A stretch of 57,702 nt of DNA, the filler included, from Hydrolagus affinis (Eukaryota), in assembly GCA_012026655.1 (NCBI GenBank). It is 4 parts of 4 records of this genome, joined end to end, with 100 filler letters (N's around TTAATTAATTAA, not from the genome) between each part and the next. Parts side by side here need not be neighbours in the genome. Positions count along the whole stretch, not along the records: positions 1 to 13,112 come from JAAILG010020919.1; 3 more parts are not named here. The stretch is one strand, 5' to 3'. Below, piece after piece: positions 1-13,112 of the stretch. Position 1 is the stretch's first letter. Each line of letters opens with the position of its first letter. The position numbers and the translations under genes were made by a program. The notes below the pieces were generated by a model, which ran no database searches, was not told where the DNA came from, and saw only the letters and a list, made by a program, of their open reading frames with translations.

Positions 1-232
1 ATTAATCTGGGTCGACAGATGTGTAGCTATGTTGTGGGTTTCACTTTCGGACCGCTGCCACCATGTTATATTCGAGATATAAAAGAGAGACCATGGAGAG
101 ATCGACTTTCATGTAAGACGGCTTTATTCAGAAGACCACAAGCATGCAATTCCATGTGCCACCACAGTGGTCACGAGATGGCATTATAACCGATACCTCT
201 ACATATAAGGGCATTGTAATTAGGCTAATCCT

Positions 233-700
233 ACAGATGGTACCAGAAATGAGGGACTTCAGCTACGAGGAAAGGCTAGATAGTCTAGGTTTATATTCAT
301 TGGAACAAAAAGGTTACGAGGAGACCTAATAGAGCTTTTTAAGATCATGAAGGGATTCGACAGAGTAGACGGGGAAAAACTGTTTCTACTGGTGGGCGTA
401 TCAGTGACTCGTGGTCATAGATTTAAAATAGTTTCAAAAAAAGCAGAGGGGAGGTTAGGAGAAATGTTTTCACTCAGCGAGTTGTTTGAATCTGGAATGC
501 ATTGCCTGAAAAGGTGATGGAGGCCAATTTGATAACAGCTTTTAAAACAGAGGTAGATATTTATTTGGGGAGGATGGTTTGCAAGGTTATGGGGAGAGAA
601 CTGGGAAGTGGGATTAAATTGCCCTTTTCAAAGAGCCGGAACAGACTCAATGGGCCGAATGGCCTCCTTTGGTGTCGTGAGATTCTATGGTTCTATGATA
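233..700 (+). mobile_element. CR1-type LINE, 3' fragment of ORF2 plus 3' tail
   Basis: Decayed RT C-terminus (MVPEMRDFSYEERLDSLGLYSLE...; WNALPEKVMEA) ending in ggccgaatggcctcc...attctatggttctatga; homologous to 13213-14130. Confidence 0.9.
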
Positions 701-744
701 ATGTTTTGGTTGAGCTGAGCGTCAATTTTGAAATTGCCCTCTAG

Positions 745-1240
745 TGGTGGGAAGACCTGTTGGAGTCTAATTTGGGTCACAGCAAAAAAAAGGTCGGAAA
801 CAACTGTTCTTACCCCATTCCTGTGCTGACCAGGTAAAGATATTCAGAGACTAGATCACTCTTTTATTGTTCCATTGTTCTAGTGTTTACACCAGTAGGC
901 AGCTCGCCACTAGTCAGTGCTTACCGCACAAGATCAATTTTAAAGTGCTTTACCCTCAACAACAACAACATTTTTTTTAATGGAAATTGAAACTTTAAGG
1001 AACTTTTTGAAAATGTCTTTTCAAGAGAAATTGGATGTAATTAAGAAGGGAAGGCCGAAACCTGACTTAAATAACTTACATAAACGGACGGGACAGAAAA
1101 TTACATGATCTTTTCAGCCGAACTGGTATGTAAGAAAAGAGTGGCTTTGTGGCTGTGCTGTGAGTAACAGACTCTTTGGCTTCCCGTGCTTCTTATTTTC
1201 CACTAGTGATAGTGTGTGGATAAGAACCGGCTACAGTAGG
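745..1240 (+). mobile_element. hAT-family DNA transposon fossil (N-terminal TTF-type zinc finger region of a ZMYM1-like transposase)
   Basis: From about 1012 it translates as MSFQEKLDVIKKGRPKPDLNNLHKRTGQKIT*SFQPNWYVRKEWLCGCAVSNRLFGFPCFLFSTSDSVWIRTGYS. This fits the SFQ..WY..K.WL......LFCFPC.LF...W pattern and has an in-frame stop. The 5' boundary is approximate. Confidence 0.7.
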
Positions 1241-1254
1241 TAGGTAGAGGGGGT

Positions 1255-1812
1255 TCCAGGAACTCAGGATCTGGCTGGCAGCTAAACAGGATCTGGGGTC
1301 TCGGGGAGTGGCTGGTAGTCAGAGATTGTCATGGAGTCTTGGAGTCTGGCTGGTGGCTAGACGGAGGGCTGGGCTCTAGTGGACCATCTGGTAGCTGAAG
1401 GTGGAGACATGGACTGGAGACTGGCTGGTAGCTAGAGTGGGTTCTGGAGTCTCTGAGACTGGCTGGTAGCCAGATGGGTGGCCAGGGTCCTGGGAACCAG
1501 CTGGTAGCTGGATGGAGATCTGGGTCTCTGGATATGGCTGGTAGCTGGAAGGGGTGGGAGGGGTGGTGTTCCAGGATGCGGAGTCTCGGGGATCTGCTAG
1601 TAGCTAGAGTGGGGGCTGGGGTCTCAAAGTTTGGCTGGCAGCTAGAGGTGGGTCCAGGGTCACGGGGGCCAGCTGGTAGCTATAGGGGTCCAGGGTCTCA
1701 GGGACTGGCTGGAAGCTGGATGGGTGGCCAGAGTCACGGGGATTGGCTGGTAACTAGAGCAGGGGCTGGGGTCTCGATATCCGGCTGGTAGCTAGATGGG
1801 GGCCAGAGTGTT
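1255..1812. repeat. Degenerate ~36-38 bp G-rich tandem repeat, left part
   Basis: Recurrent core ctggctggtagctag followed by G runs and gggtctc; AGCT cores spaced 36-38 nt (e.g. 1602, 1640, 1678, 1714). Confidence 0.85.
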
Positions 1813-1814
1813 GG

Positions 1815-3505
1815 GAACAGCAAAAAATTACATTTATAGAGCGCCTTTCATGTCGGGAGGACGTTCCAAGTCACTGAACAATCAGTTCGGGACGCAAGCA
1901 AGGATGATGGGCAACGTAGGGAGGGGGGCAGGAGAGAGTTAGGAGGGGAGGGAGAGAGTTGGGAGGCCAGCAGAAGGTATGGTCAAAGAGGAGGATCTTG
2001 AGACCGGCCTTGAAGGACGTGAGGGAGAGAGTGAGGTGAAGGGACTGTGGAATGGAGTTCCAGATTGTGGGGGCAGAGAAGCTGAAAGCCTGTCCGCCGA
2101 TGGTAGGGTGGGTTGGGTGGGGACATGGCGCAGGCTGGAGCCTGCTGAACAGAGGGGCTGGGGAGATTCATAGGGAGACAGCAGGTAAGAGAGTTAGGGG
2201 GTGGCAAGGCCGTGAATGGCCTTGAAGGTGAGGACGAGGATCTTGAATTTGATCCTCTGGGGTCAATGCAACCGGGCAAGGGAGGGAGTGATGTGGTCAC
2301 AGAGCTTGGTGCGGAAGAGGACATGAGCTTCAGAGTTCTGGATGATCTGCAGCTTTTGAATATCAGACAGACATGCAGTCAGGACGCTGGTTATCCTCAA
2401 GTTGAGGGTAGAAGTGAAAAGGTAGAGTTGGGCGTCATCCAGGTAACGTGAAAATTTACCCCACATCTGCGGATGATGTCACCGAAGGGGAGCATGTAGA
2501 GGGTGAAGAGGAGGGGACCAAGTACAGAGCAAAGAGGATTCCACATGAGACACCGCACGTGCAAGGGCTGGAGGAAAAGCAGTTGGTGGACACAAAGTGG
2601 AGGTAGTGTGAAAGGTAGGACTGGAACCAGTTGAGGACAGAACCTTGAAAGTTGAGGTGGTGTAGGAGGATTGTATGGTCCACCGTGTCAAAGGTGGTGG
2701 ATAGGTCGAGGAGGCAGAGGTAGCCCTGGTCACAGATGGTCAAGATATCATTAATGACTTTGTTCAGGGCAGTTTCCATGCTGTGATTGGAGGGACTCGT
2801 GGAGGGAGTGGGATGAGAGAAAGGCAATGACCCTTTCAAGCTCCTTTGACAGGAAGGGGCGATTGGAGATGGGTCAGTAGCTTGATAGCTATGGCACATC
2901 AAGGGAAGGTTTCTTGAGGATGTTGGTGATAGTGGCTGTTTGAGGGGAGTGGGAACAATGCCAGATGAAAGGGACAGGTTGCATAGGTCAGCAAGACCAT
3001 TAGACCAGATTTGAGTTAGGGGTGTTCAGCGGCCCGTACCTGGCCCTTGAGTGAGCAGAGATGCCTGGTGAACCAGGGTGAGGTTTGATAGTGGGCAGTT
3101 TGGGAGGTGAATCGAATATTGTAAAGAGGGTTTTGTGGAGGAGAGTGAATGCAGAGGATGGGTCGGAGCGGGATGTGGGCCAAAGGGGGAGGAGGTCAAA
3201 GGACTCCAAGGCAGTGGAGAGGGATTGTGGAGAGATCTTCTTCCAAGGGCAGTAGAAGATGGTGGTAGGATTTGATGTAGTGGGGAGATTGATAGATGAT
3301 TTGAAAGATTTGAAATGGTGTTCAAAGATGGCCTTGTCAGTGATGGTTACATCTGAGACACTGAGGACCTGGGTGATCATCAGGTCAAGCGGCTGGCCAT
3401 GAACATGGGTGGTGGAGTGGATATGGAGGGAGAAGTTGAGAGAGAAGAGGGAGGAGAAGTAAGAGGAGGTGGAGCAAGAGGGGGTGAAATGGAGGTTTAA
3501 ATCTG
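1815..3505 (-). mobile_element. L2-clade LINE, 5'-truncated and decayed, inserted in the tandem repeat
   Basis: Minus-strand ORF fragments with RT motifs (LLDLSTTFDTVDH, YLDDAQLY) and endonuclease remnants; family 3' tail (rc of ...cccgacatgaaaggcgctctataaatgtaa) near 1820. Confidence 0.9.
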
Positions 3506-3509
3506 TGAC

Positions 3510-4510
3510 CAGAGAGTAGCTAGAGGTGGGGCTGGTGTCTCAGGGACCGTTGGTAGCTAAAGGGTGTCTGGGTCTCTGGATCTGGCTGGTAGCTAAATTG
3601 GGGGGCTAGGGTCTTGGGGACTCGCTTTTTAGCTACAGGGATGGCTGGGGACTAGGGTTCTCAGGCATCAGCTACTAGCTAGAGATGGGGCCATGGACAT
3701 GGGGTCCTGCTGTTAGCTAGAAGAGTTGCTGGGGTTTCGAGCTCCATCTGGTAACTACAGTGGGGGGCCAGGATCTCAGGTAGCTACAGGAGTGGCCCAG
3801 GGACTTGGGCCACAGATGGTAGCTACAGGAGTGGCCCAGGGACTTGGAGACTGGCAGGTATCTAGCAGGACTGGGGTTTCATGTTAACTGAGACCAGCTG
3901 GTAGCCAGGGATGGCCCAAGGTCTCGGGGACCGGCTGGTAGCTAGTGGGAAGGCTGGGATCTCCATTTCTTGGGTCTTGGTTGGTAAATATTTGGTGTTC
4001 TATGCTCACTGGGACTGTTTGGTGGCCAGAGGTATCCAAAGTCTCAGGGAGTGCTGGAAGCTAGAGTGGGGACTGGGTATCTGGGATCAGTTGGTAGCAA
4101 AAGGTGGGCTGAGGGTCTTGGGGTATTGGTATACAGCTGGTAGCTACAGGTTGGGCTGGGGGCTCAGGGACCAGATGGTAACCAGATGCGGGATGGAGGT
4201 CTTACTGATCAGCTGTTATCTAGATGGGGGCCGGGGTCTCTGGGACCGGCTGATAGTGAGGTGGGGGAGGGAGTGGGTGGAGGGCTCTATCTTGGTGTTT
4301 TCCGGTACAGAGGGTAGCTGTAGGTGGTTCTGGGGTCTCCAAGACTGGCTGGTATCTGGAGGTGACCAGGATCTCAGGGATCAGCTGATAGCTAAATGGA
4401 TGGTGTTGTCTCAGGGTCTGGCTGTTTGGTAGACTAGGTTCTGGGGTTTTGGTGTACTGTATTGGGGAACTGCTGATAACTAGGGGGGGTAGGGCATCTC
4501 AGTGACTGGT
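3510..4510. repeat. Degenerate ~36-38 bp G-rich tandem repeat, right part
   Basis: Same ctggtagctag/gggtctc unit as 1255-1812, resuming after the LINE. Confidence 0.85.
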
Positions 4511-4576
4511 TGGGAACTGGTACGATCTCTCACACTAGACACAGTGTAATGGGGTATTTCACACAAAATCCATTGA

Positions 4577-4655
4577 TTAAGGAATCTCAGACAGATACAG
4601 TTTATTAAGGAATCTCAGACAGACACAGTTTAATAAGGAATCTCAGACAGACAGC
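4577..4655. repeat. Three direct copies of a ~28-bp unit
   Basis: taaggaatctcagacaga occurs three times in tandem. Confidence 0.85.
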
Positions 4656-5394
4656 TTAATCTGTTTCTTAAGGGATTTTGAGTAAATGAAGAACTGCCTT
4701 GTGACTTTTCCATATATTTTCTCACTGAACATTCCTGAAAAGACATAAGAATGGGAAACATAGTAAATAATTGGGATTGAGAGATTCAGACATCACTGGC
4801 CACTGATCAGGATACAGTATCATTGATGCCACTTGGAAACCTCATAGCTGAACTGTCCATGATGTGACAGGTTTGGCAATGGAGTGAGTTTCCACTCTCT
4901 CTGACGATCTCTAGTCTGATTCCTGATCCAGGTGGATCCACAGTATATCCAGGACTCTCTCTCTCTCTCTCTCTCACACACACTGCTGCTAACAACACAG
5001 CCCCAGCCTGGTTAACCCTACAGCCAAAGCCCTAACTAACGTGGAGGGTGGTCCTAGCTGGATAAGCAGCAGGAAAGCTTGTCAGACAGTGGTATCAAAG
5101 GCATGCTGTGTGTGTTTAGCTAGTTAGACTCCAGCAGTTGCCCCAACACACACTCTGGGCTCCCTCCAGGCCTTAGCTCTTGCCAACCAATGCCTAATAT
5201 TCTCTGGAATTATGTAAATAGGATGCTTCCCTCCAGGGAGAAAGCTAGAGAGAGTGCATCCCATTCCACAATCCATCTCTGACATTTCCACGTGGAGGTG
5301 GGGTGGAATTTTCAGCTTGGTTTAGAGATTCTCAAACAATGATGATGGGTTGCAGTGACCTGGCTGGTCAAAAAAAATAGACATTGGTGCTGGC

Positions 5395-5530
5395 CACACA
5401 CAGGTCACCATGACAGACAGTGATGCCTGCGCCACAGACAGTGATCACTGTGACAGACAGTAATCGCTGTGTGACATAGAGAATGGCTGCTGTGTGACAC
5501 AGACAGTGGCCACTATGGCACAGACAGTGT
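5395..5530. repeat. Short degenerate cacagacagtg-type minisatellite
   Basis: Repeated (c)acagacagt motif at ~20-nt spacing. Confidence 0.6.
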
Positions 5531-5558
5531 AAGAGTGAGCGAGTTGCACTGTTACTCA

Positions 5559-5704
5559 CTAGAGCGAGCGCTGTTGGCCGTGGAGACGCTGCCTCTCTTT
5601 CAGCAGTAAGATGATGCCCACGATGGCACTGATGATTCCCAGTGAGATTCCCAGAGCACAGATCACCGTCCCCGTTCCGCCCTGAGCCTCAGGCACCTTC
5701 GGCC
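5559..5704 (-). CDS. MHC class II alpha chain, connecting peptide/TM/cytoplasmic exon
   Basis: Acceptor ctcag, phase 1; (G)PKVPEAQGGTGTVICALGISLGIISAIVGIILLLKERQRLHGQQRSL*. Shows the class II alpha TM pattern C-x-x-G-x-x-x-G-x-x-x-x-x-x-G and closely resembles shark class II alpha as I recall it. Confidence 0.92.
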
Positions 5705-6264
5705 CTGAGTGAGGAGAGAGGAGCAGCTCAGAGCTGGCACACATTTGGACACACAGGGAGGGAACACAGGAACACAAACATTTAGGGAAAGACATAAGAG
5801 GGACAGTGTTGTGTGCAACTGGCTGCTACATTTAGCTCACAAAATACAAGCAATCCACTTTACAGTATATTCTGTGAAGACACCGACGGAGGGGTCAAAG
5901 ACCAATGCACACACCAACCATACTACATAGGAACAGGAAGCCATTCAGCCCCTCAAGCCAGTTCCACCATTCTAGAGGACATGGCTGATCTGTACCTCAA
6001 CTCCAATTACCCACATTTGCCTCATATCCCTTGATACCCTGACCTAACAAATATCCATCCACCTCAGTTTGAACAGTGAGACTGGATCCAGCCATAATCA
6101 ACAGCCTTTTGGAGAGAGAGAGAGAATTGCAGATTCTCACACGCATTTACGTGATTTCACCCCTAAATGGCCTGGCTCTAACTTTATGTTTGTGCCCCCT
6201 TTTGTAGAGATTTGTCTGTTTATGGTCCCATTATTTTCTCCATTACCATCTTTTCTCCCCCACA

Positions 6265-6975
6265 TATGCACCATGACCAGTGCTGCCTTCCACCACCTCT
6301 GCAACATCTCCAAACTCCACCACTATATCACACAGGCTGCCGAAATCCTTGTCCATGCATTTGTCACATCAAGGCTTGACAATGCAAACTCCCTCCTCGT
6401 CGGCCTTCCCTTTACAAGCTGCAGACCATCCAGAAATCTGCAGTTCATGTCCTCGCCCGCACCAAGCTCCGCAACCACATCACTCCCACCCTTGCCTGAC
6501 TCCATTGGCTCCCCATCCCCCAAAGGATAGAATTCAAGATCCTCATCCTCACCTTTAAGGCCATTCATGGGCTTGCCCCCAACTATCTCTCTGACCTGCT
6601 GTCCCCCTATCAACCTGCCCACCCCCTCCATTCAGGAGTTCCAGTCTGCTCCATGTCCCCCACCCGAACCGCCCTACCATCAGTAGATGGGCTTTCAGCC
6701 TCTCTGGCCTCACACTCTGGAACTCCATCCCACAGTCCTTTGCCTCACTTCCTCCCTTGCATCCTTCAAGGCTGGTCTCAAGACCCTCCTCATCAATTGT
6801 GCTTCTGATGCCCTCCCAAATCTCTCCCACCCCTCTTAACTCTCCCACTCCCAATGCCCCTATCCTGCCCCTCCCCCCGCCCCTACCCCCGCTTGGGTCC
6901 CAACCTGACTGTTCAGCACCTTGGGACGTCCTCCCGATGTGAAAGGGGCTCTCAAAATGTAATTCAGTTGTTGTT
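6265..6975 (+). mobile_element. L2-clade LINE 3' fragment
   Basis: AFHHLCNISKL...LVHAFVTSRLDNANSLL and the family 3' tail ttgggacgtcctcccgatgtgaaagg...gttgtt. Confidence 0.9.
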
Positions 6976-7207
6976 TAATTAATACCTGTACTAAATGCAT
7001 TTAATACTTTTCTTTGGCTTATTTTTAGATGATCTTGTACAGCTGGTATTTTATCTTCCTCCTCTATTGTGAAAATGTTAGCAAAATTTTTTTTTTTGAG
7101 GGATAATTATTAGCAAGGAAACTTGCCCAAGATTTCGCCCTGCCTGCCTGGAATTGAACCCTGGTCTCAAGCAAATTTATAAGTAATCCCAGCCCCAACC
7201 ATGTGGA

Positions 7208-7502
7208 GTCATGTAGTTCCGTGGTTGGAGCACTCGCCATGCAAGTGAGAGACCAGGTTCAAATCCAGGCAGTACGAAACCTTGGGCAAGTTTCCTTACT
7301 CCACATGCCTAATAATAATCCCTCCAAAAAAAATTGGTCATCTCAATCCATGACTGTGTGTGGGAGACTGCTTTGTGGAATTGGCTGCCACGTTTTATCC
7401 ACAAATGTACATTCCATTCACTTTACAGTATATTCTGTGAGGCGCTTTGAGTTGTCTAGAAGACATGAAAAGCACTATATCAAATGCAAGGATTATTATT
7501 AT
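7208..7502 (+). mobile_element. tRNA-derived Deu-type SINE (representative copy; many more in the window)
   Basis: tRNA-like head (gtggttggagcactcgcc...ggttcaaatcc), central aattggctgcc core, tail gaaaagcactatatcaaatgcaaggattattatt. Confidence 0.8.
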
Positions 7503-7869
7503 GAAAGTAATTATTTAATAAGTCTGCTACTTGTTGTTTAATAAGTGGAGCTTTTGTGTTTCGGGATAAGTCCTGGTTTGTATTGTCCCAAATATTTTAT
7601 TGAAGATTTACCCACTGTATGTCTGTGGGTTTATGGAATGTCCTCCAGATGTGAAAGGCGCTATACAAATGTACTTTTGTTGTTGTTTACCCATTAAAGC
7701 TTCAGCTCAGTTACCACAGTTAATTCATTTCACATCCCTGCAAAGGTTACATTATTTAAATGTAAAAACCTGTCTTTGTGACTGTCCCACCTTCCTCTCA
7801 AACCTTACAGCAAATTCAATCATTTTAGGGTAACTCTGAAAAATGTCCCACAACCTATCAGAAAACTAA

Positions 7870-8150
7870 CAGATACACTGAGACACCGCTGCACTCACAC
7901 ACACACAGAGACACCCCCACATACACTGAGACACCTCCATCACACACTGAGACACCCCCATCACACACACTAAGACACCCACACACACATTGAAACACCC
8001 ACACAAACACAGAGACACCCCCACACACACTGAGACACCCCCATCACACACACTAAGACACACACACATTGAAACATCCACACACACACTGAGACACCCA
8101 CACACACACACACTGAGGCACACTCTCTCCACACACTGAGACACCCTTCA
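7870..8150. repeat. CA-rich minisatellite in the MHC IIA intron
   Basis: ~22-bp units of acacacactgagacacccc. Confidence 0.85.
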
Positions 8151-8186
8151 CTCTCCCCCTCCTCCCCTCACAGCCTCCTCACTGGT

Positions 8187-8229
8187 CCCAGAAGTAGACT
8201 GCAGGCTCCCTCAAGCTGCTGTGCCCCAC
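8187..8229 (-). pseudogene. 3' end of a second, paralogous MHC class II alpha2 exon
   Basis: Encodes VGHSSLREPAVYFW; 35/43 nt identical to the 3' end of the intact exon by hand alignment; no GT donor at the homologous position. Confidence 0.85.
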
Positions 8230-8283
8230 ACTGCCCCACCCCCCCTCCCCCCCATTCTTCCCCCCTCCCCACACGTCACTGAC

Positions 8284-8565
8284 CCCAGAAGTGGACTGCG
8301 GGCTCCGCCATGCTGCGATGCTCCACCTCGCAGGTAAACTCATCCCCAGGACGGGGCACGAAGCTCAGGTAGGTGAACCTCTGGAAAGAGTAATCCTTCT
8401 CCATGTAATACTCAGTGATGTTCACACCCTCCTTCACCGGCTCGTTGTTCTTCAACCACTTCATCGTCAGTGCCGGGGGGTAGAATCCAGCAGCGTGGCA
8501 GATCAGGGTGTTCATCACACCCCACTCAACATTATCCTCGGGGAAGACAGCAACCTCTGGTGGGA
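8284..8565 (-). CDS. MHC class II alpha chain, alpha2 (Ig C1) domain exon
   Basis: 282-nt phase 1-1 exon with acceptor ctccacag and donor gtcagt: (V)PPEVAVFPEDNVEWGVMNTLICHAAGFYPPALTMKWLKNNEPVKEGVNITEYYMEKDYSFQRFTYLSFVPRPGDEFTCEVEHRSMAEPAVHFW. In frame with the TM exon. No alpha1 or leader exon found in the window. Confidence 0.93.
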
Positions 8566-8590
8566 CTGTGGAGAAAGAGAGTGAGTGTCA

Positions 8591-8667
8591 GTCTGCTTGA
8601 CAGATCAGTGGGTTCATCACACTGCACTCAACAGGCTCCTGGGGGTAGACAGTAATCTCTGGCTGGA
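8591..8667 (-). pseudogene. 5' end of a second, paralogous MHC class II alpha2 exon
   Basis: Has its own acceptor (tctctatctgcag) and encodes (V)QPEITVYPQEPVECSVMNPLICQAD*; 59/77 nt identical to the start of the intact exon by hand alignment. Confidence 0.85.
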
Positions 8668-9589
8668 CTGCAGATAGAGAGAGACAGAAAGTGTGAGTGC
8701 CTGTACACCCCCCACCCTGGCTCTCACACATGGAGGAGAGATAGAGATGGATAGAGAGAGAGCCTCTTTATCCCCCATACAGCTCACACTCACACACACT
8801 ACAACACACACTGAATAGGGAGTATGAATGGCTGCTCACTCACACCTGGCTCACACACATTCTCCTCGTCCCCCAGAGGAGGTGGGAAGGCAGAGGGATG
8901 GAGGGGGAGAATTCTAGTTGTAGGCAATGGTGGCTGAAGGCATGGCCACTGATGGTGGAGTAGTGGGGAGGAGGACAAATTGGGAGGTCAGAGATGGCCG
9001 AGTGGAGACAGCAGGTAGTGAAGCAGAGTAGTAAGGAGGTTGGAGAGGTAATAATAATAATTTTTGCATTTGATATGGCGTTTTTCACACCTTGACGTCT
9101 CAAAGTGCTTCACAGAATATCATAGAATCTTACGGTACAAAACAAGGCCATTCAGCTATTTAATCCCACTCCCCAGCTCTCTCCCCATAACCTCGTAAAC
9201 CCGTCCTCCCCAAATAAATGTCTACCTCTCTTTTAAAAGTTGTTATCGAATCAGCCTCCACCACCTTCTCAGGCAATGCATTCCAGATTCGAACAACTCG
9301 CTGGGTGAAAAAATTTCTCCTCACATCCCCTCTGTGAATGGAGTTTACAATATAAAGTCAGTTGATTGTATAATTGTGGATGAAATGCCGCAGCCAATTG
9401 CATACAGCAGTGTCCCACAAACAGCCATAGATTAGGATGACCAATTTATTATTTCTTTTTTCCAAGGGATTATTAATTATTAATATATAATCATTATGTA
9501 TGTGCTGTAAGGCAACTTGCCCAAGGTTTTGCTCCACTCATAATTAAACCCAGGTCTCTTGCTTGCAAGTTAGTGCTCTAACCACTGAG

Positions 9590-10193
9590 GTATCTTTGTG
9601 AAGTTTGGATGAGAGGGGATAAAGAAAGACTGTTAATTGTGAGTAGTTGGAAATCAGTTTCCCCATTTAGGTGGGGAGGTGCAAGAGAATATATTTGATT
9701 TGAAATCAAGTGAGAGGATCTTGATATTAATCTGTTTAGTAAGAGTGAGCCAGTGGAGCCTGGTGAGGGCTGGAGTGAGGGGGTACAGAATTTAATATGT
9801 ATGATAGGGGGCAAGGGGAGGCCAGTGAGGGCTGGGGTGAAAGGTGGATGGAATTGACAAACAAACCAAATTACATTTGTATAGTGCCTAGAAGTTGGGA
9901 AACAATGACTCATTCCAGGTCCTTAGAAAGGAATGGAAGGTTGGAAATGGGGGGATAGCTGGAGAGTAGGGATGGGTCCAATGTTGGAGGTGATGATAGC
10001 AGTTTTTAGATGGGTGGGGACAGTGCTGGTGGATAGGGAGAGGTTGATGACATCAGTTAGGAGGGGGGCTAGGAGATGGAGCTGGGAGATGAGGAGAGAG
10101 GTGGGGATGGGGTCATGGGAGCAGGTGGTGGGTTTCATTTTTTGGATGAGAGCAGAGAGGATTGGTGTAAAGATAGGGTCAAAGGAACACACA
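9590..10193 (-). mobile_element. L2-clade LINE internal fragment
   Basis: Minus-strand KMKPTTCSHDPIPTSLL...VPTHLKTAII, typical of the segment upstream of the RT domain. Confidence 0.75.
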
Positions 10194-10503
10194 CAAGGAG
10201 CACACAAACACACATGGGGCACATACACTAACGGGGCGCATACACTTTGGGTGCACATACACGAGGTGCACTAACAGAGAATGGGGGCATATACATACAG
10301 AGTGTACACAGTCAAAAGGGCAGGGGTACACACGCATGGGGTACGCACACACAGTGGTGGGGTGGCATCCATACACACAGGTTGCACATATACACATGAG
10401 GGCCATACACACACAAGTAGTGTGCATACACATGGGCTGCACACTCACATGGGATGCACAAACATGCGCAGAATGCACATAAACAGTGCACCCGCATACA
10501 TGC

Positions 10504-11625
10504 ACAACAACAACAACAAAATTACACTGATAGAGAACTTTTCATGTCAGGAGGACATCCCAAGGCGTTGAACAGTCAGGTCGGAACCTGAGTGGGTGTG
10601 GGGTTGGGGGGTTGGGTAGAGGGGTAGAGGGAAGGAGAGTAGGAAAGTGGAGAGAGATAGGAGGGCAGCAGAAGGCACGGTCGAAGAGGAAGTTCCTGAG
10701 ACTGGCCTTAAAGGAGGAAAGGGAGGAAGTGAGGCAAAGGGATTGTGGGATGGAATTCCAGTGTGTGAGGGCAGAGACTGAAAGCCCAGCCACCATACAG
10801 CAGTTCAGGCGGGGGAATGGAGCAGGCCAGAGCCCGCTGAAAGGAGGTCGGGGAGATAGGTGGGGGCAAGGCTGTGAATGGCTTTGAAAGTGAGTTTGAG
10901 GATCTTGAATTGGATCCTCTGGGGGATGGGGAGCCAGTGGAGATGGGCGAGGGTGGGAGTGATGTGGTCATGAAGCCTGGTGCGGGAGAGAACATGAGCT
11001 GCAGAATTCTGAATGATCTGCAGCCTGTGAAGGGAGGAGATGGGGCGGCCGACAAGGAGAGAGTTCCCATAGTTGAGCCTAGATGTGATGAAAGCAAGGA
11101 TGAGGGTTTCGGTGGCATGGGCGGTGAGGTAGTGGCGGAGTCTGGCAATATTGCGGAGGTGATGGAAAGCTGTCATGGTGTGGATTTGGGGGAGGAAGGA
11201 TAGTTTGGAGTCGAAGAAGACAGCCAGATTCCTGACTGGCTTCGAGACGTGGAGAGAGCAGCCTTGAACTCTGATGTTGTCAGCGCCTATGGTGCAGAGG
11301 CACTGATGCGAGCCAATCAGGAGGGCCTCCGTCTTGTTGACGTTGAGTTGTAGGAAATTTGCCCTCGTCCAGGACTCGATGTCGGACAGACATGCAGTGA
11401 GACACGCAGTCACGTTACCAGTAGTCCTGGAGTTGAGGGTGGAAGCAGAAACATAGAGTTGGGTGTCATCCACATACATGTGGAAATTTACCCCATGTCT
11501 GCGGATGATGTCGCCGAGGTGAGCATGTAGAGGGTGAAGAGCAGGGGGGCAAGGACAGAGCCCTGGGGAACACCGCATGTGACTGTGTGAAGACTGGGGG
11601 AAAAGCCGGGGTGCACATGGGGTGC
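10504..11625 (-). mobile_element. L2-clade LINE, 5'-truncated
   Basis: RT motifs [17 protein letters not shown] and YVDDTQLY; 3' tail with (caa)n near 10504. Confidence 0.92.
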
Positions 11626-12639
11626 AAACCAGGAGCAAACACACACACCCACAGGGACTGCACATCCACACAGTGTGCAAACACACTCAGGGGACATACA
11701 CAAATGATGAACACACACACTGGGGGGAGCAAATACACATACATGGTGTGCAAACACACAGGGGCACTGACATGCAGTGCACACAAAAACATGAGGTGCA
11801 CACACACATGATGCACACACACCAGGGCACACACACATACCACCATATGAATCACACAAGCAAACATCATACAGAGCATGTACATACAAAGCATGCATAT
11901 ACAGCACTCGCACAACCACAACAACTTGCACTTATTTACCACTGACTCCGAGTCAGTATGGGGTGGTGGGAGGGGGGTGTAGCTGGTCATAAATACAGTT
12001 GAAGAGGAAATTTTCCGGGCGGGACTTGAAAAAGTGGAGAGGTGGTGATAAAGACACAGGGATTGATGGAGAGAGAGGGAGGGGGAAAGGCACAGGGATC
12101 GAGGGAGAGAGGGAGATGGGGCAAGATGGAGAGATTCAGGGAGGGAGGGAGATTGGAGAGGGAGAGAGGTGGCATAGAGTGCTGCAAACAGATCAGTGGG
12201 CTGTACAACCACAAACAACACTAACAACTTGGATTTATAATAATAATCACATTTATATAGCGCTTTCCACATCTTATCAATGACTCAAAGTGCTTCACAG
12301 ATACAACAGTGTCCCAAGGTAGGGACCAGAGCAGGGGGAGAGGGGTCGGGGTAGGGGGAAGGAGAGCAGAAAAAAACGACTGTATATTTGTGGGTGAAAT
12401 GCGGCAGACAATTTGCGCACAGCAGTGTCCCACAAACAGTCGCGGAGGTGAGGCCATGGGAGAAAGGGGTGAAAGAGGGTAAGGGGAGGGGTCGATGTAA
12501 GGGGAAAGAGAGTAGGAAAGCCGACTGTATATTTGTGGATGAAACGCCTTCCATGCAGGATGGTGTCTCAGAGCGCTTCACAATAATGGATCCCGGGCCG
12601 AGCCAAGGGGAAGGGGAAGAAGGTGGCAAGCACACTCAC

Positions 12640-13112
12640 CAGTGTGCTGTATAAACACACACACTAGTGTGCTAAATAAACAACAATATTGCACTTATAT
12701 AGCTCCTTTCACGTTGGGAGGACGTCCCAAAGCGCTGAACACACACACAACAGTGTGCTGTATAACACACACACACACCAGTGTGCTGTATAAACACACA
12801 CAGACACCAGATTGCTGTATAAACACACAGAGATGTGCTATATAAACACACACACAAGCACCAGTGTGATATATAAACACACACACCAGTGTGCTAATAT
12901 ACACACACACACACACACCAGTGTGCTAATATATACACACACCGGTGTGCTAATACACACACACACACACCAGTGTGCTAATACACACACACACACACCA
13001 GTGTGCTAATATACACACACACACACCAGTGTGCTAATATACACACACACACACACCAGTGTGCTAATATACACACACACACACACCAGTGTGCTAATAT
13101 ACACACACACAC
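12640..13112. repeat. ~30-bp tandem repeat running into the gap
   Basis: Units of (ac)n-cagtgtgctaatat. Confidence 0.9.

Follow-up and report, generated by a model that had tools for sequence, protein, structure and literature searches.

Decayed copies of both ends of an intact MHC class II alpha2 exon border that exon in the chimaera Hydrolagus affinis

Whole-exon tandem duplication is common in vertebrate genes, and what tandem exon duplication leaves behind can be mutually exclusive exons or pseudo-exons. When ectopic conversion is driven by homology, sequence is replaced in register, and no duplicated ends should remain. A repeat that takes in an exon end is found in human F7, where the first unit of the intron-7 37-bp minisatellite spans the exon 7/intron 7 boundary and the pseudo-donors are silent (Borensztajn et al. 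2006, PMC1557585). For the class II genes of cartilaginous fish, old divergent lineages of IgSF domains have been reported in sharks and not in the one chimaera studied, and the absence of between-lineage IgSF-domain conversion has been stressed (Almeida et al. 2020, PMC8010645); MHC gene conversion or exon shuffling, discussed in the same paper, would explain alpha2 affinities that are unlike those of nearby sequence. In the literature searched, we found no account of a class II exon that lies between remnants of its own two ends.

Such an exon lies in a window (the whole stretch of DNA analysed, 57,702 nucleotides, filler included) from the genome of Hydrolagus affinis, within the 13-kb piece that forms positions 1 to 13,112 (JAAILG010020919.1). 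As in F7, an exon-intron junction is covered by a head-to-tail repeat; intronic pseudo-sites thereby accompany a true splice site, and the exon is intact. The F7 array is confined to the donor side, where its several 37-bp units are nearly identical and the pseudo-donors functional, whereas the present repeats have two copies per side, are ~100 nt long and 19–25% diverged, and occur on both exon sides, with a pseudo-donor that reads as dead and a pseudo-acceptor that looks intact. Exon sequence and splice signals would have been duplicated locally, with decay of the extra copy, as after tandem exon duplication; however, just the two exon ends are doubled, on opposite sides, and there is no second full-length exon. 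The duplicated exon ends also set the locus apart from MHC gene conversion, which in register leaves none. The closest proteins are those of the Callorhinchus milii class II alpha cDNAs, yet these represent another gene and species, with 20% difference in alpha2 when compared as cDNA products.

The sequence identifies the gene as MHC class II alpha of a holocephalan (chimaera lineage). Its intact alpha2 (C1-set Ig) exon, here called exon A, occupies positions 8284–8565 on the minus strand and is 282 nt long, open and of phase 1/1; the length equals that of the alpha2 exons at the Heptranchias, Pristis and Chiloscyllium loci. The translation matches the Pfam C1-set family (PF07654, E 3e-22), has both conserved cysteines and the Trp (LIC...FTCEVEH, MKW), and finds its best solved-structure matches in residues 86–178 of HLA-DP/H-2A alpha (HLA-DP alpha, E 5e-25). 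It is 80% identical to the C. milii class II alpha cDNA product (P0182 cluster, AFM89456.1 and others) and 57–64% identical to the class II alpha of elasmobranchs (sharks and rays). In a profile search seeded with exon A, the holocephalan matches were C. milii cDNAs only, and exon A used by itself gave no match within its length band. A holocephalan-specific 'VMN' motif is common to exon A, to the decayed copy of its 5′ end described below and to C. milii. The connecting peptide/TM/cytoplasmic tail exon, phase-compatible with exon A, was located by tblastn at 5560–5702 on the minus strand, with 91% identity to C. milii and 66–72% to elasmobranch class II alpha.

No match to an alpha1 exon was obtained in the 4.4 kb upstream (8700–13112). 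This is unremarkable, since intron 2 spans ~10 kb in the sevengill shark (Heptranchias), and the alpha1 exon probably lies outside this piece. At 5560–5566 the TM/tail exon ends in ...CTCTAG/TGAGT (slashes mark junctions throughout); an alternative reading, CTCTA/GTGAGT, would make it a donor that splits the last codon, in which case a further 3′ exon may complete the stop. The C. milii product P0188 continues with ...RSLYHHCLSQP where the exon ends here. Two kinds of database match that resemble the present case were discarded. Pristis P0176 (272 aa), which aligns over the decayed 5′ copy, is a mispredicted retained intron and not a common duplication. The two-Ig-domain class II alpha 'isoforms' of Protopterus and Esox (P0003, P0010) are not alpha2 duplications, their second domain being beta2-like; they are probably alpha-beta read-through gene models.

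Re-reading of the sequence placed all elements on the minus strand and at the coordinates of the preliminary description, whose layout of outer acceptor, 5′ fragment, spacer, complete exon, spacer and 3′ fragment held to the base. In transcription order, the 3′ end of intron 2 (8668–8692) carries the outer acceptor, with its AG at 8669–8668, a CTCAC branch-point-like motif, a tract with 17 pyrimidines in 20 positions and the junction ctgcag/TCCAGCC. It is followed by B5′ (8591–8667), a decayed 77-nt copy of the alpha2 exon 5′ end that was recognized by Tandem Repeats Finder (TRF), by blastn and by its identity to exon A. B5′ reads QPEITVYPQEPVECSVMNPLICQAD and then meets an in-frame TGA at 8590–8588; its frame is that of exon A, the offset of 102 nt corresponding to 34 codons. 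The 25-nt spacer between B5′ and exon A (8566–8590) includes this TGA and forms a minimal complete acceptor for exon A, with CTGAC/CTCAC branch motifs, 16 pyrimidines in 20 positions, the AG at 8567–8566 and the terminal letters ...ctctctttctccacag.

On the other side, exon A ends in the donor GGG/gtcagt, and a 54-nt G-rich spacer (8230–8283) holds this working donor (GTCAGT) and an intron start. B3′ (8187–8229) is a decayed 43-nt copy of the exon 3′ end, found by blastn, and is followed at 8149–8186 by an intron start that, on sequence comparison, is homologous to the one after exon A. The position of the outer donor reads ACCAGT in place of GTCAGT (GT to AC), by which the pseudo-donor after B3′ is predicted to be dead. 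Directly downstream of the B3′ flank, intron 3 continues into a (GGGTGTCTCAGTGTGTGTG)n minisatellite (7891–8144; TRF periods 20/79/83).

The resemblance between the inner and outer copies is not confined to coding sequence, which adds to the original observation: it continues beyond both exon edges into the flanking introns. Homology extends at least 16 nt upstream of both acceptors, with a CACTCAC motif common to both farther upstream, and ~31–38 nt downstream of both donor positions (8326–8253 against 8229–8149). Ungapped, the 5′ copies are identical at 59 of 77 positions (76.6%; 8565–8489 against 8667–8591) and the 3′ copies at 35 of 43 (81.4%; 8326–8284 against 8229–8187). The earlier estimate of ~77–81% identity is thus matched by measurement, and so is the statement that this is not a recent tandem duplication, B being a diverged relative of A at 76.6–81.4% identity. 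TRF independently reports a repeat at 8499–8683 (period 102, 1.8 copies, 79% matches, 0 indels), and blastn within the window returns E = 1e-16 for the 5′ repeat and 4e-9 for the 3′ repeat with its flank. Local alignment scored 83 (5′) and 57 (3′), whereas 300 shuffles reached at most 25 and 29, which places both repeats far beyond chance expectation. The copies are adjacent and head-to-tail, each unit comprising an exon end together with an intron end, as in a junction-straddling tandem duplication.

The window is rich in tandem repeats, with 21 TRF rows, and a minisatellite abuts the B3′ flank, which marks the region as prone to slippage. GT/CA-rich minisatellites occupy 7891–8144 (20/79/83-nt units, intron 3) and 12739–13112 (28/58 nt, at the end of the piece). 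The possibility that the 3′ repeat is itself the first unit of the adjacent minisatellite, in the manner of F7, was rejected, as the donor flank scored 19 against the array, below the null maximum of 23. Other elements surround the gene. Decayed reverse-transcriptase ORFs at 10805–11686 and 2456–2902, both on the minus strand (Pfam RVT_1, E 3e-5 and 3e-4), are fragments of LINEs, the former lying in intron 2 and the latter downstream of the gene. ORFs at 9160–9324 (minus) and 502–744 (plus) encode similar peptide motifs and may belong to an interspersed repeat, and the segments 8913–8976 and 9041–9100 are very high-copy repeats in the genomes of relatives (summed depth 10^4 to 10^6).

Assemblies of MHC regions are prone to error, and two haplotypes or paralogues stitched together could have been mistaken for an exon with duplicated ends; the raw reads of one run, X11, gave only low-complexity poly-C/G-rich matches. 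The copies, however, are merely 77–81% alike, unlike stacked haplotypes, and unitigs of at least two other data sets, 3–10% different, are collinear across B5′, spacer and exon A. These came from Logan unitigs of other public runs, compared with the window over 8145–9100. A contig of run X2 (record 11) is collinear over 8488–8669, through the exon 5′ end, the 25-nt spacer and B5′ to the outer acceptor, with 14 differences, and one of run X7 (record 24) covers the same elements over 8481–8679 with 19 differences; both are 90–92% alike to the window over B5′, spacer and the junction with exon A. On the 3′ side, another X7 contig (record 17) runs from the end of exon A across the donor into B3′, skipping 38 nt of the G-rich spacer (8275–8238), and an X2 contig (record 9) has a second copy like the exon 3′ end beside that end. 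X2 and X7 differ from the window by ~3–7% in exon A and by roughly 8–16% in B5′, and are therefore not the assembled sample. X7 is genomic DNA, since its introns are as deep (35–40) as the exon flanks and its contigs total ~1 Gb. Because contigs of other runs carry the same arrangement, the structure is almost certainly real and predates the split of those genomes. The mis-assembly against which the preliminary description had cautioned is contradicted by these collinear contigs across the junction regions, and we regard an artefact as highly improbable.

The orthologue in the sevengill shark has no repeat at either splice junction, which places the event on the holocephalan side. Re-typing of the gene, which was first suggested as a possibility, would not have been recent on these comparisons: the structure is old, being common to genomes whose B5′ copies are roughly 8–16% different.

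The relatives' contigs hold further differences from the window. A second alpha2 copy in X2 (record 10) is identical to exon A over 8474–8531, departs at 8531 and rejoins at 8769, and X7 is 2–3 times deeper in the exon interior than at the exon 5′ end. The relatives thus seem to have an additional locus or haplotype whose exon 5′ end is different, possibly one that lacks the B5′ repeat. Upstream of the outer acceptor, contigs of all three relatives skip 73–84 nt over 8680–8752 of intron 2, in place of which X7 has 38 other letters; the segment is a lineage-specific indel or insertion. At the paralogous pair 8551/8653 the window has C in the A copy and T in the B copy, and both X2 and X7 have the reverse, a swap that requires either two changes or that the repeats exchanged a short stretch of sequence. 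Altogether, 6 of 16 of the relatives' variants match the paralogous base. Conversion between A and B was rejected as their explanation, retention of ancestral states being sufficient except at the swapped 8551/8653 pair.

We lean, with little more than even confidence, towards local duplication across the splice junctions as the origin of the structure. Both junctions of the alpha2 exon would have been duplicated head-to-tail long ago: at the 5′ end a unit of 102 nt, i.e., ~25 nt of intron (branch point, pyrimidine tract and AG) with the first 77 nt of the exon, and at the 3′ end a unit of ~97 nt, i.e., the last 43 nt of the exon with the start of intron 3. The inner copies, still continuous with the remainder of the exon, would constitute the working exon A, and the outer copies, B5′ and B3′, would have been left in the introns as pseudo-exon pieces subject to neutral drift. 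Local replication slippage, or a switch of template in cis, is the likeliest origin, whether in two separate events or in a single complex one that involved two backward switches. Duplications of this kind could be tolerated, as one intact exon keeps its own splice sites. Later, fast change of the polymorphic N-terminal strand, possibly together with in-register conversion from other class II alpha copies, may have set the working exon apart, and its divergence would explain why A has derived states shared with C. milii and B the ancestral ones.

The arrangement of the repeats, adjacent, head-to-tail, in the same orientation and with homology that reaches into the introns, supports such a local origin. 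So do the complete acceptor set in the 25-nt inner flank, the abundance of tandem repeats, the neutral look of B5′ (below) and the lack of a third alpha2 piece in the within-window search. Since the inner flanks are homologous to the outer flanks, two head-to-tail duplications give the same picture as a transplanted exon, and a second locus is unneeded. On a rough estimate, two independent straddling duplications around one exon are unlikely a priori, which counts against the local reading; the similar divergence of both outer pieces from A (18/77 and 8/43 differences) would suggest a single event. The duplication mechanism and the number of events are our inference, as is the splicing outcome considered below.

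A history that begins with three tandem whole alpha2 exons, followed by deletion of the 3′ part of copy 1 and the 5′ part of copy 3, would draw on a common process in vertebrate genes and agrees with the order and orientation of the pieces. It requires at least four events, however, and its deletions must have stopped just 25 nt upstream and 54 nt downstream of the exon that survived; nothing else is left of any intron between copies. The within-window search found no third alpha2 piece, such as the 'missing middle' of B, in the 13-kb piece. We consider this history quite unlikely.

The age and ancestry of the two copies bear on the remaining alternative, in which exon A came from elsewhere. 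B5′ looks as though it evolves neutrally, like a pseudo-exon: 12 of its 14 changed codons are nonsynonymous, the conserved Trp of VEWG has become Cys, and a stop codon follows. The 18 sites at which the 5′ copies differ were polarized with three elasmobranch alpha2 exons. The outgroup shares the state of A at 7 sites and that of B at 6, is mixed at 3 and agrees with neither at 2; by this count the two branches, A and B, are of about equal length. An A branch as long as that of B argues against a simple scheme of constrained A and neutral B, which predicts a longer B branch. B5′ has ancestral Ile, Tyr, Glu-Pro and Asp where A has derived Val, Phe, Asp-Asn and Ala, and these derived residues of A are shared with the type-1 cDNAs of C. 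milii; B3′ and C. milii both have Leu and Tyr where A has Met and His.

The C. milii cDNAs fall into two types in the N-terminal strand of alpha2. Type 2 (P0197, P0199, P0200, P0201 and P0202, compared with P0182) differs by F113Y, E115K, D116Q, N117P and E119Q and also by Q134F, A136P and A137K, the remainder of the alpha2 exon being identical, and this mosaic patch suggests either two loci or a short tract of conversion. Type 2 and B5′ have the ancestral Y and P in common, but B5′ lacks the derived states of type 2 (K115, Q116, Q119) and therefore is not a member of that type.

The ancestral states of B5′ that have been lost from both A and C. milii indicate an old split between A and B, which is probably older than the separation of exon A from the C. 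milii type-1 exon. Such an age needs only a slow neutral rate, with ~9–12% change on the B branch. The derived states that A shares with C. milii mean either that the duplication predates the split from C. milii or that A came from another lineage; together with the equal branches, they fit an old local event as well as a foreign origin of A.

A foreign origin would take the form of a 362-nt patch (25 nt of intron, exon A and 54 nt of intron) inserted out of register into a B-type exon, where it replaced the middle 162 nt of the resident exon; the source would be another class II alpha locus or allelic lineage, and the mechanism templated patch repair or an inter-locus template switch. One event would then cover both repeats and their similar divergence, and ancestral states in B5′ together with equal A and B branches are as expected of two long-separate functional lineages. 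The two N-terminal types of C. milii imply that divergent alpha2 lineages exist in holocephalans, and the second alpha2 copy that diverges after 8531 (in X2, and by depth in X7) implies more than one locus or haplotype in the relatives. Against this, neither a donor nor a full B-type exon was found among the C. milii cDNAs and the relatives' contigs that were compared, and B5′ does not belong to the known C. milii type 2, of which it lacks K115, Q116 and Q119. Conversion guided by homology proceeds in register and would leave the exon ends single, and a non-homologous insertion is most unlikely to have hit the homologous exon, and in the same orientation, by chance. Moreover, the TM exon of the supposed older recipient is closer to C. 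milii (91%) than is exon A (80%). We therefore hold a transplant to be unlikely, although less so than the three-copy history.

Copying between loci, as proposed in the preliminary description, thus stands in part: B is an old, diverged relative of A, but no donor was found and the inner flanks are homologous to the outer ones. Our data do not lend support to ectopic conversion in its in-register form, since both exon ends are present twice together with their splice flanks. Such ends could come from non-homologous patch insertion or from a template switch, which can equally be local.

The outer acceptor lies upstream of exon A. That an upstream decoy was created, as anticipated, agrees with an outer acceptor that is intact and with an in-frame stop that follows B5′. 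By its motifs the outer acceptor looks competent and no weaker than the inner one. Splicing to it would lengthen the mRNA by 102 nt and bring in an in-frame TGA well before the last junction; such an mRNA should be non-productive and probably prone to nonsense-mediated decay. Among the differences listed for X2 and X7, none falls on the TGA or the outer AG, even though B5′ is roughly 8–16% different. The outer acceptor, with its in-frame TGA, might be conserved as a 'poison' 3′ splice site that adjusts the output of class II alpha through non-productive splicing; the B fragments might also, or instead, serve as short conversion donors for the dimorphism of the holocephalan alpha2 N-terminus. 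We offer both as speculation to which we attach a low probability.

The structure is real but probably a fairly ordinary relic of small local duplications, and not a proven exon transplant. For annotation it means that the true start of the alpha2 exon is 8565 and that predictors can take the outer acceptor, which leads to truncated or frame-broken class II alpha models in chimaeras. For exon evolution it would provide a clean and datable case in which exon ends have turned into intron through junction-straddling duplication. Should the decoy acceptor be in use, the gene would also serve as a simple natural model for competition between 3′ splice sites 102 nt apart. Mosaics in class II genes are usually ascribed to conversion, and the present structure warns against reading each of them as an ectopic exchange. 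In holocephalans, the ancestral states preserved in B5′, together with other chimaera loci, could help to date the origin of the C. milii alpha2 types.
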